Source: Utricularia gibba
Taxonomy: Eukaryota > Plantae > Magnoliophyta
Assembly: GCA_002189035.1 (NCBI GenBank)
Contig: NEEC01000013.1
Span: 3,154,252-3,218,251, forward strand
DNA: 64,000 nt
Direction of reading: 5' to 3'
Shown here: piece by piece, positions 5,798 to 64,000 of the stretch
How the letters are laid out: each line of letters starts with the position of its first letter
How positions within the stretch are numbered: the stretch's first letter is position 1
Notes under the pieces: generated by a model
Seen by the model: only the letters and a program-made list of their open reading frames with translations
Told to the model about the DNA's origin: nothing
The model's database searches: none
Program-made: the position numbers and the translations under genes

Positions 5798-6311
5798 ATG
5801 CCTATTATCTTGACGAAATCGGGCAGATTCTTTGACGCCTGCGAGATATCTGGAATGGCGCTGCGGGAAAGGGCAGAAGAAAGATGGACGCGACTAACTA
5901 AAACAAGCGTCCGATACAAATTGGGTTGATAAAATAGGCAAGGCAAAGCAAAGCAGAGGGGTGGTCCTCCTGCGGCGCATTTTATTTATTTATTTATTCA
6001 TAACAGTACGCTCCTTTTATTTGATTTGATTACCATGCCCTACACTTTTTTTAAACGAGAAAATGGTGTGGGTTTTTGTTGTGCACATGGCTCTTGTAGC
6101 TCCTGGATTTTCTGCCTCCTTAGGGTAAAAAAGAAATGCAGCCCGTTGCAACTTTCAAAGCAGCTCATTATGCGAATTAAGTTTCCAGGATGACTATCGT
6201 ATGTCCAAGGACACTCTACTTGTCAACTTCGGCGTCGCATCACACTCTAACCTGTGCTTATAAATACACATTCTAAAGACACCGGCAACAAACATTAATT
6301 TCTAAGCAAAG

Positions 6312-55177: not shown

Positions 55178-55801
55178 ATGGCTATGGCATCCCAAGCCTC
55201 TGTGTTGACATCCACACTCGCAAACACCAGCCGTCTGGTCCCTGCGTCGAAGCACCAATCTCTCTTACATTTCTCCACCGTGAAGCCTATCTTGTCTTCC
55301 ATTGCCCACCGCCCGATCCGAGCCATGTCAGGGGAGGCGCCGCCAGCTACGGTAACCGACGCTCCCGCAGGATTCACTCCACCGGAACTGGATCCCAATA
55401 CACCGTCGCCAATATTCGGCGGTAGCACCGGCGGGCTTCTCCGCAAGGCCCAGGTCGAGGAATTCTATGTCATTACCTGGGACTCCCCCAAGGAACAAGT
55501 GTTCGAGATGCCCACAGGCGGCGCCGCTATCATGCGCCAGGGCCCGAACCTGCTGAAGTTGGCTAGAAAGGAGCAGTGCCTGGCCTTGGGGACGAGGTTG
55601 AGATCCAAGTACAAGATCAAGTACCAGTTTTATCGAGTGTTTCCTAATGGAGAGGTCCAGTATTTGCACCCCAAAGACGGTGTCTACCCGGAGAAGGTGA
55701 ATGCTGGTAGGACCGGGGTGGGCCAGAACTTCCGATCCATAGGTAAGAACGCCAATCCGATCGAGGTCAAGTTCACTGGGAAGCAAGTGTACGATTTGTA
55801 A
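55178..55801 (+). CDS. PSAD: Photosystem I reaction center subunit II, intronless, with transit peptide
   Basis: [59 protein letters not shown]; start MAMASQAS at 55178. Confidence 0.97.
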
Positions 55802-57052: not shown

Positions 57053-57505
57053 ATGGCAAGAGTTGAAGGTGAAAGCAAAGAACCTCCCAATGAGCAGGCT
57101 GTTGCGAGCATTTACACTTCAATGAGAACTGAAATAAATCAAATTTATTCCAAAATCACCGAACTAGAAATGGAGGTCAGCGAGCATTCTTTGGTAATCA
57201 ATGCCATAAAACCATTAGATCCATCCAGGCGGTGCTACCGAATGATTGGAGGAGTTCTTGTTGAGAGGACAATTAATGAAGTTTTACCTGCTGTGCAAAG
57301 AAACAAGGAAGGGTTGGAGGAAGTCATTGCTCGACTAAGTGAAGCATTGGAAAAGAAGAAAACTGAGATGGCTGACTTTGAGGCTAAGTACAAAATCAGA
57401 ATTAGAAGGGTTGACGATGAAATTAAGGATGAGAACATCAAGAAGGGAGGTAACGCCCAAGGAGTTCTTGTAGGTTCTGCTGATGCTGATGCGCAGCCAA
57501 AATAA
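57053..57505 (+). CDS. PFD2: Prefoldin subunit 2 (single coding exon; probable 5'UTR intron)
   Basis: KITELEMEVSEHSLVINAIKPLDPSRRCYRMIGGVLVERTINEVLPAVQRNKEG, C-terminal QGVLV; cag acceptor just upstream of the ATG. Confidence 0.93.
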   Translation: MARVEGESKEPPNEQAVASIYTSMRTEINQIYSKITELEMEVSEHSLVINAIKPLDPSRRCYRMIGGVLVERTINEVLPAVQRNKEGLEEVIARLSEALEKKKTEMADFEAKYKIRIRRVDDEIKDENIKKGGNAQGVLVGSADADAQPK

Positions 57506-57887: not shown

Positions 57888-58287
57888 ATGGTTGCCGTCC
57901 CCATGAGTTTCCTGGACAGAGGATATGGGGCGCCGGGCGGATCCATTCCTGTCGAAATGTGTAAGAAAATTGATACGGTTTTGTTTGAATGGGAAGCCCT
58001 TCAAATGGCCGTCCAAAATGAGTGGGGTGGGTGGAGTACCATGCAGAAGTGTCATCAACTTGTCTCTGATGTACTATCCTTGTTATGTGGAGGATTAGCT
58101 GAGTTAGACGAGTTGGAAAATTTGCTTCACGAAAGAATGCTGCTCAGTTTCAATGCAGAAATTGAAGACGGTAGCACAGAGGAGGTATGTCTCTGCCTCT
58201 TTTTCATCGGCGACTATTCCTCTGATTTATTTAGTAATATAGGTGGCTGAGCAGTTGATGATCATACGCAATGAATACTTCAAATAG
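57888..58287 (+). CDS. TSR2: Pre-rRNA-processing protein TSR2-like (WGG domain), short form of about 113 aa; exons 57888-58184 and 58243-58287
   Basis: WEALQMAVQNEWGG, ELENLL, FNAEIEDGSTEEV|AEQLM; GT-AG intron keeps the frame. Confidence 0.78.
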
Positions 58288-58989
58288 AGGCATGATTGTA
58301 AACAAATGCGTGATGTTTCACGGGTAACCCTTTCAGCTAGTGTTTTTGTGTTGATCCAACGAGGTGCCATTGAGCTTATCGTTTCGCCTCTCTGAATATG
58401 TGGACATTGTTTTTTCCCTGTTGTCTTCATCTAACAATGGATTTTTGTTTATCAACAGTGTACCTTGGAAACAGGGCCTTGAGAGCTCGTATTATGTGTT
58501 TTGCACCAGGATAGGTACTTTGGTTTAGAGTTTTGTCGTAGCTTGTCAAAATGGCAACGCAACATTATGAATGCAAAATGGAAGTTAGATGCTTTGGGAG
58601 AAAAGGGGCGGGGGCCGTAGTGGGGATGGGAAATTCCAGTCCTAGATGATGAATTGAATGTAGCGAATGTTTAACGATGGTATGAGATACTTGTGACCTA
58701 TGAAGTGGTTGTGAGAATTCAAGGTAAGAGAGGGAGTTGGCCCTTTGGCATGTTCATTCTCATCCAAAACAACCTGAAATAAAGGCTATCGTGCAAGTGT
58801 GCAATTTTTTTTTGAATATTTTTAATTTGTTGTAATAAGAGAATCGCACGGGATCGGATGGAATTGCTGTGCGCGTGTTTTGCTTTTGAAGGATTGAAAT
58901 GATTTCATTAAATATGGTGCAAACCGGACTGAATATTGGGTAAATGAGATTGTTTATCTCAAAGTTTAGAGCCATATGATACCTGAGCA

Positions 58990-59245
58990 AGATAATAAGC
59001 TGATTGGGGTGTCCTTCCCTGCTGGCGAGGCGAATGGTGCGAGACTGGGAAGCCTTGATTTTCCTTTGGACATCAGCGGCTAGTGCAATCAATTCGCCCC
59101 AGTAAGCTTCTGCTCGGTTGTTCTGCAGTAACGGGAATAGGCGATTAGTCTCGATAAAGTTGGAGCCTTGGAGGTCTTTAGCAACGCCAAGTGCGAAGGG
59201 GACAACTAAAGCATCAGCGTGCTCGCGTGAAGAGACTGTTGACAT
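58990..59245 (-). mobile_element. RNase H-like (RVT_3-type) relic, possibly from a non-LTR retroelement
   Basis: ORF 58760-59245 begins SREHADALVVPFALGVAKDL..FIETN..LIALAADVQRKI..IRLASREG, loosely following the plant RNase H-like pattern (HAEALA..AL..A..L..VESD..DI..L..F.H..REGN). The 3' part of the ORF looks non-coding. Confidence 0.35.
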
Positions 59246-60587
59246 TATGCGTATCTCCTGCTGATGGGTGCTCCAAGAAGGTGATTATTTTTTCCTGTGG
59301 TATTTGCGTGAGATCATCAAGAACTTGGTGTAATTTTTTAACTAACTCTCATAAATGTAATATACTCCAGAACACGAAATCATCTTTACTAGATGATATT
59401 TATGCAAAAGTTATGTATGACGTAAACATGCAATTGCGACGTATAAATTTTATACCTAGCATGATCAAATCCCTAATTAAATAATATTATAAATTATTGG
59501 CTATTCGGTTGACTTTATTTTATCCTTTTATTAGACAATCACGGCTTTTATTTATTATACATAGTGGCGCAAGAAATGCTACAAAGCCAACCCAGTTCAG
59601 GGGAGGAGGTTATCTAACTATGGCCTTCATTGAGGTGCATCTTTTTCGGTGTCTAGATTCTAGTGATCAGAGTAAGCTAGAAAGAACATCTAACTTAGAC
59701 GTCAGATGTACTACTAGCCTTTCCTGGGGTTGGATATCAATTCTTGGTTCCACCACAAATGGGGTGAGGAGGAGGAGGATGTGCGATTTTGGGAAGATTA
59801 TTGGGGAGGGGGTGGTAGGGCTCTAAAAGAATGATATCAGGAATTGTATGGTTCAAGGATTGGATATAATTGCTCCTTAGGTGAAGCATGGAGATGGGTG
59901 AAGAGTAACACAGCCAGAGATGAGCTACTAGAAGGAAATAGGGTTTAGGGAGAATGAAGAAATAATCCAAGACTCGATAGATGAATAAGGGGATGGAGCG
60001 ACAGATTGGAGCTGATGGTAGGTGGAATTGATACATTTTTCCATGGGGAAATTCAAGTGTGTGGAGCTATAATCATCATGCAAATAGTGGATTCAAATGT
60101 GAGAACAACATTCTCTCTATTTAGACAATAACATTAGAGTGGATTCAAATACAGTCAATATTATAATATCAATTCATCAGTGGCTGACAAACTCTAAAAC
60201 ATATGTTCACAGTAGAGCCTATGTGAGCGAGTAGTGACATCATGCAAATGGTGTATGGTAAAATTTGTAAAATAGAGAATTAATAGGGAAAATATCCCCT
60301 AAGGATACATATGTTATAAAAAAAGGATATTCGATTATGAAATTTGATGATTTTGACATAAAAAACTATTATTTTTAGGATGATATTATCGATAAAAACT
60401 TTTTCAGGAATCTGTGTTTACAATTTATTTCCACTAATACAATCCTTGGGCTTTATCAATGTGTCATATATTATATAAGAAAAGAAGACAACATAAGATG
60501 AGGGTATATGATGTCATGAGGGAGTTTTAACCAAAGCATTTTACACTCAAGTTACATCAACTCAAAATAGTACATTGTTTACATTGT

Positions 60588-62004
60588 TCAATCACTATCA
60601 CTCAGAAGTGCAAGGAGATTGAGAAAGAGATTGATTATATCGAGATAGAGGCATGTAGCTGCTTCAATTGCCTGATCGTAGTTGAAGCGCTTGATGATAT
60701 TATCAGTATCATAAACTATGAATCCACAGAAAACTAGTGCTCCAATGCAAGCAAGAACCTGCTCTCCCACTCTTCCCATGGGAAATATGATCTGTCGCAT
60801 CAAGAATTTGAAGAGCACATTATTGAAGTGGGGAAAGTGTGGAACTATACTTTTCCAAAGAAGAATGTACCCTGATGATTCCAAAGGCCATGAGAAGTAA
60901 CATAGCACAAAGTAAAAAGGGACCCAAAAAGTTGAAGTCATAGCCTCGATTTGCGGCCACGAATGTGAAAAGTGTGAGAGCAGTAGTCACCAACAGTGTC
61001 AGACCAGCAGCCAGCAACACAATTTGCCCTGAAAAATGTCACCATGAATAAAAAAAAATCCACCCCTACTATTTTCTAAATTGTAATAAATCTAACTTGT
61101 GAAATTTACCAACATCTTAATACCAGCACAAAAAGATCACCTTTCCTTTGGGTGCAAGCAGCTCCCACCATCCATGCCATTGCAATGGTGAAAAGAATCA
61201 AAAGAATGATGTTCCAGGGATGCCGTTGGCTGAAGCAAGACATCATAAAGCACACTACAATCACGAAGCCGGTAAACAGATCATCATCACCGAGACTCTT
61301 GATCTCATCCCATTCATTTTTAATATCAATGCCATTTTTTTTTAAATTGAAGCCACAACTCAGAAATGATTTATTTTCGAACTTCAGATCATGACCCCCC
61401 CCCCCCCCCCCCCCCCCCAAAGAATTAAAAGACGAGAAGGGAAAAATCCCATATATAGGATCCGCATTGCCCAACAATGGCAGCAAGCCAATCAATTGAG
61501 TCCATATGGAGATAGCGCAACAAGTTTTTAATCGGTTTCATTCACAATGTTCTAAGTTCCATAACACATGCAACGTCCATCACAGTTGATCCAGGTAATC
61601 AAAGTCACAAAAAAAAGAAACTGAAGTCATGTCATACACATGGTTTTTCTTGAGTTCGCATTTTTTTAAATAGAGCGAACATATTCATTGCCAAAGCGAA
61701 TTTCAAAAGTTGCCAGAGCATGTGTAATAAAATAACTATTAAAAAAGCTCACATATAACGGTGAGGATCATGGCAGCAATCATGATATAAAGCCCTGCAG
61801 CTGTTTGCATGAATTCGCGAATTGGAAGAATGAGAAACATGGCAAGGCCAACCCCAACCGTAAGAAGAAATTGTAAGCACAGGATCGAATAAACTTTGCG
61901 GATGAAACCCAATCGGAGATCTGGTGGATCTTGCATGCCGGGTACATTTGATTGATGTTACCCATCTCGATGTCTTGACCATTCTTGTTCGAAAAGAATG
62001 CCAT
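60588..62004 (-). CDS. Bax inhibitor-1 / Lifeguard (TMBIM) family membrane protein; apparent 1-nt frameshift at 61938-61942
   Basis: DIEMG..MYP(G)MQDPPDLRLGFIRKVYSIL, HPWNIILLILFT, YDFNFLGPFL, FIVYDTDNIIKRFNYDQAIEAATCLYLDIINLFL. Confidence 0.88.
61395..61418. repeat. C24 homopolymer (G24 on the sense strand of the Lifeguard gene intron)
   Basis: 24 consecutive C seen directly. Confidence 0.85.
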
Positions 62005-62865
62005 TATTGAACGATAAAACTTTTTTCAGATGCTAATACGATAAGTGTTTAAAAAATTTGGAATGGGCGACCTTTATTTTACAGAACAAAAGGAAAGAAA
62101 TCTAGGAAGCTAGATATGCTGTGGTGTCGAAAAGAAATGAAGGGCATCAGAGAATGCAGCCGAAATTTCAGGACATACATGATAAGAAGAAAGAATTCCT
62201 TGAATTTAAATGATGGGTATAGGATAACCAATGAAAAAATACATACAACAATAGAAGATTTCCCGGCTCTCCCTTATTTAAGAAAGCCTCTACATTGCCT
62301 TCAAGAGTGAGCGAACGGTGTATCAAAATTCCGAAAATTACAAATAGTAAACAATCTTGAACTGAACAAGGACAACATGTAAACAAAAAAAAAGAAGAAA
62401 GATTAATGCGTTATCTTCACTTATATGTATGCGGAAATGTAGAGATCCTATAGTTTTAAACATGAAGTTTTGAATAGAAAATTCGATCACAAAACCAAAC
62501 CAGACACAATTAATTGACACAACTAATGAAACAAAACTAACTTTATTCATAACCTCCTAATCTAGTAAATGATGGAAACTTTATCCTAATGACACATTTA
62601 TTTTGGACATAAGTAAGATCTTATAAACTAAACAACACATGTATAAAACCCACATTATTAACTATACGGCCTTCGTACTTCTCCTAATAATGATGTCTTT
62701 GAGCAAAATTCAATTCGCTTACTCAGTTGAATAAATTTGGAAACACACAAAGGCATTGTTAAAAGATCATTTGCTTACTCCTAAGTGGCACAGAATACCA
62801 GTCCAACTTGACCATCATTATTACCTTCACGTAAGCCATTAAACTCAATATAGATATGTTTACAA

Positions 62866-62970
62866 TTTAGAGTTCAAAGTTTAGGTTTGAGAGTTTAGGG
62901 TTTAGGGTTCAATATTGAGGATCTAGGGTTTAGGGTTGAGGGTTTAAGGTTGATGGTTCAAGGTTCAGCA
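62866..62970 (+). repeat. Degenerate interstitial telomeric tract (about 15 heptamer-like units)
   Basis: tttagag ttcaaag tttagg tttgagag tttaggg tttaggg ttcaata ttgagga tctaggg tttaggg ttgaggg tttaagg ttgatgg ttcaagg ttcagca; same strand as the terminal array. Confidence 0.85.
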
Positions 62971-63375
62971 CTTATGGCCGGTGCCATCCCCTCTGACCAT
63001 CATCATCTGAAGCATCATAGAGCCGGCACAGTTGATAATAACCACCATGCAGGCAGCACCAAAGAGAGTTTTCAGCTGAAATCCATCACCTGCTGCTGCT
63101 TAGGATTTTTTCAGCATTGTATTGGAAATTGCTATCTATACTCTTGGACAGAAGTTTTCGACATAGTCAGACGTTTGTATGCAGTGAACTGGTATGGTCC
63201 GAATTTCTCGGATCCAACTCAGTATGTCCGAAATTATCGATCCGAGTATATGACCCGACCCGACCCGAATCCAGTCTACAGAGCGTTAACGAACTACTAC
63301 ACGATTTTCATTAGTCTTCGGTTCGAGAAAAACTGCCGTACTGCAAACTGCATCTCGTGCATTCGGAATCGGGAA

Positions 63376-63574
63376 ATGGTAACTGCATTTGCTTCCGTTG
63401 ATTTTGCCGTTTGTTTGATGTTCTGCTTTCGTTTTCCGATGACTTTTTCTGTCGATTGTATTTGAAGGCTCCGGCAGCGAAACCGATCTCTAGCCCTGTT
63501 CCGGCTGAGTGGTATCCGATCCTCGCTTTTTTCATGGTATCAATTGGCCTTGTCCTCACCGCATCTTTCTCCAT
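63376..63574 (+). pseudogene. 3'-truncated TMEM258/OST5-like gene (oligosaccharyltransferase small subunit): ATG-only exon 1 and exon 2
   Basis: ATG 63376-63378 | GT intron 63379-63467 AG | exon 63468-63574 APAAKPISSPVPAEWYPILAFFMVSIGLVLTASFS | GTAAGT donor at 63575. Matches the recalled plant OST5/TMEM258 N-terminus (AKPISSPVP..YP.L..F...IGLV.TA.FFI); the YEATSSR.. second half is absent before the telomere. Confidence 0.8.
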
Positions 63575-63662
63575 GTAAGTGGCTTTTCAACTGCGAAATG
63601 GAAATCTCAGATGTTTTTTTATGTCCGCTGTTTTAGGGTCGAGTAACCTTCTCCTCGGATAG

Positions 63663-63808
63663 TTTCGGGTTTAGGGTTTAGGGTTTAGGGTTCAGGGTTT
63701 GGGTTCAGGGTTTAGGGTTCAGGGTTTAGTGTTTAGGGTTCAGTGTTTAGGGTTCAGGGTTTAGGGTTCAGGGTTTAGTGTTTAGGGTTCAGTGTTTAGG
63801 GTTCAGGG
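63663..63808 (+). repeat. Proximal variant telomere repeats (TTCAGGG, TTTAGTG, TTCAGTG, TTTGGG, TTTCGGG) mixed with TTTAGGG
   Basis: Parsed directly into heptamers; includes an exact 49-bp tandem duplication. Confidence 0.95.
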
Positions 63809-64000
63809 TTTAGGGTTTAGGGTTTAGGGTTTAGGGTTTAGGGTTTAGGGTTTAGGGTTTAGGGTTTAGGGTTTAGGGTTTAGGGTTTAGGGTTTAGGGT
63901 TTAGGGTTTAGGGTTTAGGGTTTAGGGTTTAGGGTTTAGGGTTTAGGGTTTAGGGTTTAGGGTTTAGGGTTTAGGGTTTAGGGTTTAGGGTTTAGGGTTT
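63809..64000 (+). repeat. Canonical Arabidopsis-type telomere (TTTAGGG)n, about 27 copies to the window end
   Basis: Uninterrupted TTTAGGG array, G-rich strand 5'->3' toward the end. Confidence 0.99.

Follow-up and report, generated by a model that had tools for sequence, protein, structure and literature searches.

The first two coding exons of an OST5/TMEM258 gene set against telomeric repeats in the genome assembly of Utricularia gibba

Towards the end of the 64-kb stretch of Utricularia gibba DNA analysed here, to which we refer as the window, the beginning of a small conserved gene runs into telomeric repeats, and the question raised by this locus is whether the gene was broken where it stood or whether a piece of it was brought to the chromosome end from elsewhere. 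The original prediction, made from the letters alone, had described a housekeeping gene of the TMEM258/OST5 type cut off in its second intron by the telomere, and had allowed for both histories. According to the assembled join, this gene piece, hereafter the stub, most likely constitutes the last ~700 bp of unique DNA at the chromosome end (62966-63662).

On the forward strand the stub opens with a coding exon consisting of nothing but the ATG (63376-63378), with a GT donor directly 3' of it, and proceeds through an intron of 89 nt bordered by GT...AG (63379-63467, GTAACT...GAAG) into a second coding exon of 107 nt (63468-63574), which encodes residues 2-36 and two bases of codon 37, that is, the N-terminal tail of OST5 together with its first transmembrane helix. 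A second intron then starts with a GTAAGT donor at 63575; of this intron 88 nt remain (63575-63662), including a telomere-like 8-mer at 63631-63638. When re-read in the window, the coordinates originally given for the ATG-only exon, the 89-nt intron, the 107-nt exon and the GTAAGT donor were all correct, and the start of the telomeric repeats at 63663, 88 nt past that donor, was borne out by both the sequence and TRF. The spliced 36-residue peptide is MAPAAKPISSPVPAEWYPILAFFMVSIGLVLTASFS, and the signals of the stub are free of stop codons, frameshifts and splice-site defects. Read without further splicing the peptide would end in ...TASFSM and by way of an acceptor at 63636 in ...TASFSMVE, in either case before a stop codon, and going by these reading frames the stub would code for a one-helix peptide of 37-39 residues at most.

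The assignment of this peptide to OST5/TMEM258 has several lines of evidence behind it. Against the Pfam family PF05251 (Ost5) it scores 29.7 bits with an E value of 7.7e-7, which passes the curated cut-off of 27.4 bits, residues 6-35 aligning with positions 1-30 of the 73 in the profile. A HMMER (phmmer) search with exon 2 against 1.84 billion representative proteins gave 40 matches with E values from about 1e-7 (best 1.3e-7) to 8e-4, and all of the 13 matches that were retrieved out of these 40 are plant OST5/TMEM258-like proteins. The identity of the stub to the plant OST5 proteins retrieved is 66-81%. The proposed homology is therefore upheld by the Pfam threshold, by the plant OST5 matches and, as described below, by an exon layout shared with relatives in the Lamiales, and the observation of an OST5 stub is confirmed far beyond chance. 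The complete OST5/TMEM258 protein is a small oligosaccharyltransferase subunit of ~76-80 residues with two transmembrane helices (YEATSS...GFGSLF...), whereas the stub encodes only 36 of ~78 residues and is a gene fragment that could not work in the complex.

The comparison with relatives was made on six OST5 loci drawn from three families of the Lamiales (Erythranthe, Sesamum and Primulina). In all six, exon 1 is the ATG alone, joined to its intron in the same ATG/GTA layout as in the stub, and exon 2 is exactly 107 nt long and ends in AT with a GTA donor next to it, so that exons 1 and 2 of the stub and its intron phase match the structure of Lamiales OST5 genes to the base. The identity in exon 2 amounts to 78-83 of the 107 bases, and intron 1 measures 105-128 nt in the relatives as against 89 nt in the stub. 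Beyond this point the agreement ceases, since intron 2 extends over 1.1-4.9 kb in the six loci and is followed by exon 3 (I-YEATSS...VFL), a short intron and exon 4 (GFGSLF...YV), both of which are absent from the stub. A tblastn search with the C-terminal halves of seven plant OST5 proteins found no second half (YEATSS..., second helix) anywhere in the 64-kb window, the best E value being 0.18, and the earlier statement that no exon for this half is present accordingly applies to the window as a whole. What is present are the first two coding exons of OST5 only, telomeric repeats taking over after 88 nt of intron 2, just as had been proposed. An AAACCCT telo-box-like motif is found ~15 nt 5' of the ATG in the OST5 genes of Erythranthe and Sesamum (5985-5995 of the fetched loci); the stub has no such motif just upstream of its ATG and carries it in the opposite orientation within intron 2.

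The surroundings of the stub likewise differ from those of its relatives. In Erythranthe and Primulina an ALE2-like receptor kinase gene lies upstream of OST5 on the same strand, and downstream a WD40 gene of the MSI/CAF1C type is found in Erythranthe, Sesamum and one pair of Primulina loci, an amine oxidase gene taking its place in the other Primulina pair. Neither the ALE2-like kinase nor the MSI-type WD40 gene was found on searching the 64-kb window, remnants included. In Primulina huaijiensis two kinase-OST5-WD40 blocks lie ~590 kb apart in one chromosome record, with identical OST5 proteins and with second introns of 4.9 kb and 1.8 kb, which points to a segmental duplication in the recent past or to a duplication in the assembly.

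Instead of the kinase, the stub has upstream of it a degenerate telomere-like tract of ~100 bp (62867-62965, forward strand), which comprises ~14 units oriented like those of the terminal array and ends 410 bp before the ATG, between the stub and a gene for a BI1-like/LFG membrane protein. TRF reports its core (62879-62951) as 10.4 copies of a period of 7 with 69% matches. The tract is a candidate for the relic of a former chromosome end, or alternatively may be a breakpoint scar. Given that the usual OST5 neighbours are absent, the synteny breakpoint falls at this tract, and when the array at the other side is taken into account, the OST5 piece is found to be severed from its usual context on both sides, with telomeric repeats at each cut. 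The 410 bp between the tract and the ATG (62966-63375, forward strand) are unique within the window and presumably represent the OST5 promoter and 5'UTR. Their GC content is 46%, compared with 32% to the left of the tract, and neither of their strands yielded a Pfam family, nor did the stretch have a convincing Atlas match. A tandem repeat of GACCC (3.4 copies, 63252-63268) is located in this presumed promoter/5'UTR, ~110 nt upstream of the ATG. Neither an Rfam match above threshold nor a tRNA was detected in 58000-63660.

The nearest genes to the stub include those for PsaD (55178-55798) and prefoldin-2 (57053-57502), both on the forward strand, and the BI1-like/LFG gene, identified from its open reading frames and their translations, which is on the reverse strand (60588-62004), head-to-head with the stub, and is the last complete-looking gene before it. 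The LFG frame is broken by 1 bp at 61934-61944, where the translation reads ...NQMYP up to the break and GMQDPPDLRLGFIRKVY after it, and would be restored if the C/G run of TACCCGGCATG were one base longer; to judge from this run, the break looks like a homopolymer consensus error of long-read data rather than the mark of a real pseudogene. The closest proteins to the PsaD of the window are from Lamiales, at 83% identity, and a database look-up found no exact records of the window's PsaD and prefoldin-2 proteins. PsaD could not lead to a syntenic end either, since in Erythranthe and Sesamum this gene is flanked by other genes and offers nothing to align.

On its other side the stub is bordered by the terminal array, which covers ~340 bases (63663-64000) and is described by TRF as 48.6 copies of period 7 with a score of 580. 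The repeats directly abut unique non-telomeric DNA, their G-rich strand running 5'-3' towards the window end, and the array is probably a true chromosome end. Its proximal part (63663-63808) is rich in variant units and contains a block of five units (35 bp) twice in tandem, and its distal part (63809-64000) is made up of 27 uniform canonical 7-nt telomere repeats up to the end of the window, both on the forward strand. Within the proximal part, canonical units alternate with variants that have C for T or T for G, and one unit is of 6 nt.

The original prediction had also pointed to the telomere-like 8-mer in the intron remnant as a possible seed for telomere addition. The 8-mer is indeed present at 63631-63638, and its 7-mer core (63632-63638) would be expected only ~0.011 times per 86-nt stretch; on both strands of the 63.66 kb the core occurs 13 times, three of these being exact copies inside the upstream tract. 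As the point of telomere addition it is however ruled out, because the first repeat unit begins only after a further 24 nt of unrelated sequence. It may be a native telo-box-like element of intron 2, and, more speculatively, it may have helped to recruit telomere proteins near a break.

If the stub is a captured fragment, a complete gene would be expected elsewhere in this species. Among the best 120 of 417 matches in a profile search for the full-length OST5 of U. gibba, none was more than 81% identical to the stub; a search with the 54-residue genomic reading frame as query gave no full-length candidate, and exact look-ups of the 55-residue open reading frame and the 37-residue spliced product found no gene product on record. 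The same 417 matches extend over a wide range of flowering plants, and since OST5 is so widespread among them, the loss of a sole copy is unlikely. On the reading of a captured fragment, the working OST5 would be located elsewhere, beside its usual neighbours.

The dN/dS ratio of exon 2 between the stub and its Lamiales orthologues is 0.12-0.27, which indicates that the exon was constrained for most of its history, and this constraint together with the intact splice sites implies that the piece is young, or else a recent copy of a working gene. The dN of the stub is 0.14-0.20, that is, ~3x the value among the relatives (0.04-0.08), and three residues stand out when it is set beside 142 plant OST5 proteins. 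An I occupies a near-invariant T/S/A position where none of the 142 has I; an S occupies a near-invariant position where 140 of the 142 have F and one has S; and an A is likewise seen in none of the 142, albeit at a variable position. In sequence terms, the raised dN and the unusual residues would fit a fast-evolving lineage and a short period of decay alike.

Further evidence comes from sequencing runs, which were searched for the share of sampled words that each holds, the kind of each run being a guess and several runs designated "DNA?" behaving like RNA. RNA runs of several studies hold 0.08-0.20 of the 73 words sampled from 62960-63662, and ten RNA runs from three studies hold 0.41-0.47 of the 17 words sampled from 63468-63660; one further RNA run, included for its species label only, holds none of the latter. 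Exon 2 alone predicts 77 of the 163 word positions of 63468-63660, or 0.47, and since the observed shares match this value, the RNA that contains exon 2 has neither its boundary with intron 2 nor the intron remnant and is spliced at the donor between 63574 and 63575, as a full-length gene with normal splicing would be. The RNA runs hold a further 2-8 of the words sampled from 62960-63662 beyond exon 2, as exact matches, and these are presumably 5'UTR. It is possible that the exon 2 RNA originates from an identical full-length gene elsewhere, from an intact allele or from the stub locus itself by use of a cryptic acceptor. In one run of 2013 the share of sampled words from 63468-63660 is 0.82, which means that in data outside the assembly consensus exon 2 is joined directly to the intron remnant.

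Taken together, the choice between a healed break and a captured fragment, between which the original prediction did not decide, leans towards the captured fragment on account of the upstream tract, the absent neighbours and the exon 2 RNA that lacks the intron boundary, none of these being decisive. The reading that we tentatively prefer is accordingly that of a non-functional 5' stub, in which ~700 bp of an OST5 gene lie between a relic tract and the present telomere while a working OST5 resides elsewhere. The rise in GC content across the tract, the constraint on exon 2 with its intact splice sites and the wide occurrence of OST5 speak for it as well. In such a history, an eroded or uncapped chromosome end would first have lost all of its telomere but the degenerate base; a segment of ~700 bp originating in the OST5 locus would then have been attached, whether through end-joining with a broken fragment or through copying (filler or break-induced synthesis); and the new end inside OST5 intron 2 would finally have been capped by telomerase, the order of these events being a reconstruction. 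Against capture, the upstream tract might have arisen independently as an interstitial insertion of telomeric sequence or be the scar of an old rearrangement, the loss of synteny is weak evidence in that it is common in fast-rearranging small genomes, and the word shares of the RNA fit equally well with transcription of the stub locus and the use of a cryptic acceptor, at 63636 or in the repeats. Furthermore, with only 69% matches in the tract and RNA matches that look exact, capture must assume that the tract was already degenerate before it was buried. The simplest reading of unique sequence joined directly to outward repeats is in fact a terminal deletion in situ, whereby a native OST5 beside the LFG gene was broken in intron 2 and healed by telomerase, its distal part (exons 3-4 and beyond) being lost or turned into another chromosome end and the upstream tract being an unrelated interstitial insertion. 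The rare telomere-like 7-mer 24 nt before the junction could have aided the recruitment of telomerase, and the three residues unseen or nearly so in the 142 proteins as well as the ~3x dN would fit decay after truncation. However, a same-orientation telomere tract lies exactly at the breakpoint where the ALE2-like kinase is missing, dN/dS is well below 1 in a piece that shows no stop, frameshift or loss of a splice site, the exon 2 RNA lacks words of the intron 2 boundary, and a deletion in situ requires the loss of a near-universal gene, or else a second copy anyway. We regard it as doubtful.

Capture and deletion in situ both take the end as fixed, which it need not be. The join might be an assembly artefact at a low-coverage contig end, it might belong to a single allele or somatic clone of a vegetatively propagated plant that also has an intact allele, or the array might be interstitial, with the rest of intron 2 and exons 3-4 to be found past 64000. 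The window stops inside the array, leaving the contig end outside view, the assembly has 1-bp homopolymer errors of the long-read type, such as that in the LFG gene, and the splicing of exon 2 at its donor in the RNA is what an intact allele would produce. On the other hand, the intron and the array have in common no repeat of more than 7 nt by which an overlap assembler could have been misled, the polarity is right and a variant-rich base followed by 27 perfect units is how a true telomere is normally built, the ending of a 64,000-base window within the array suggests anchoring on the contig end, and the run of 2013, with 82% of the words up to 63660, indicates that the sequence up to the join exists outside the consensus. 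That the end is not a fixed one seems rather unlikely. It is improbable, finally, that the stub is a working unit, with a housekeeping promoter that drives a TERRA-like transcript towards or into the telomere, a functional one-helix peptide of 37-39 residues, or both. The presumed promoter, the ATG, the splice sites of intron 1 and the donor of exon 2 are all intact, a U-rich intron of 62 nt (63575-63636) with a good acceptor (AG at 63635-63636) is available, and the RNA of three studies holds exon 2 and the 2-8 upstream words exactly as in the stub DNA. Even so, the shares of 0.41-0.47 include no boundary or remnant words in any RNA run and so give no sign of unspliced read-through, the RNA may derive wholly from an identical full-length gene, neither a 37-residue nor a 55-residue gene product is on record, and positive support does not go beyond the intact signals. 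There is likewise only a slim chance of a live stub whose spliced RNA extends into the chromosome end, the last intron making use of TTTAG/G at 63636 or of acceptors in the telomere repeats; if this were true, a plant would have a telomeric transcript that starts from a defined promoter of genic origin, possibly together with a peptide that mimics the first half of OST5.

Returning to the captured, non-functional stub, we regard it as a pseudogene-like relic from which no effect on glycosylation is expected, provided that a full-length OST5 exists. If the join is real, it presents at base-pair resolution a natural plant chromosome end whose reconstruction took place within a gene, the genome being very compact and nearly devoid of subtelomeric sequence, and the stub and the relic tract 700 bp further inside record two successive end states of one chromosome.

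How the stub relates to known systems can be seen from three kinds of chromosome end. The healing of broken ends by telomeres added de novo is a classic finding in maize and wheat, with an engineered counterpart in the telomere truncation of Arabidopsis, and the stub resembles such chromosome healing in that its repeats, as assembled, are joined to unique intragenic sequence with outward polarity. Unlike in simple healing, however, the base of the stub array is variant-rich and not uniform from the first unit on, and the telomere-like 7-mer lies 24 nt upstream of the junction. In Arabidopsis, gene fragments or duplicated segments have reportedly been found in subtelomeric regions (Wang et al. 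2010 Plant Mol Biol and Kuo et al. 2006 Genetics are the works said to describe them), and the stub is similar to these in that pieces of genes from elsewhere sit within kilobases of the telomere in a plant whose genome is compact, but it differs in ending exactly at the telomere, which places the break point inside the gene. A third parallel is offered by the formation of new subtelomeres, which recalls the stub by its relic tract, its short piece resembling internal DNA and its new telomere, all in one orientation. In PMC11406999, which cites Kim et al. 2019 Genome Res, telomere-insert-telomere arrangements in wild strains of C. elegans are presented as such new subtelomere formation, and a unique sequence common to two chromosome ends of an Arabidopsis accession is discussed there in terms of recombination healing. 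The described new subtelomeres are unlike the stub insofar as its insert is of ~700 bp only and carries the 5' end of a gene, from a source locus that is presumed. The stub in conclusion adds another case to a type of event that is already known, and a neat one, since the gene concerned is tiny and conserved and the intron in which the break falls can be recognised.
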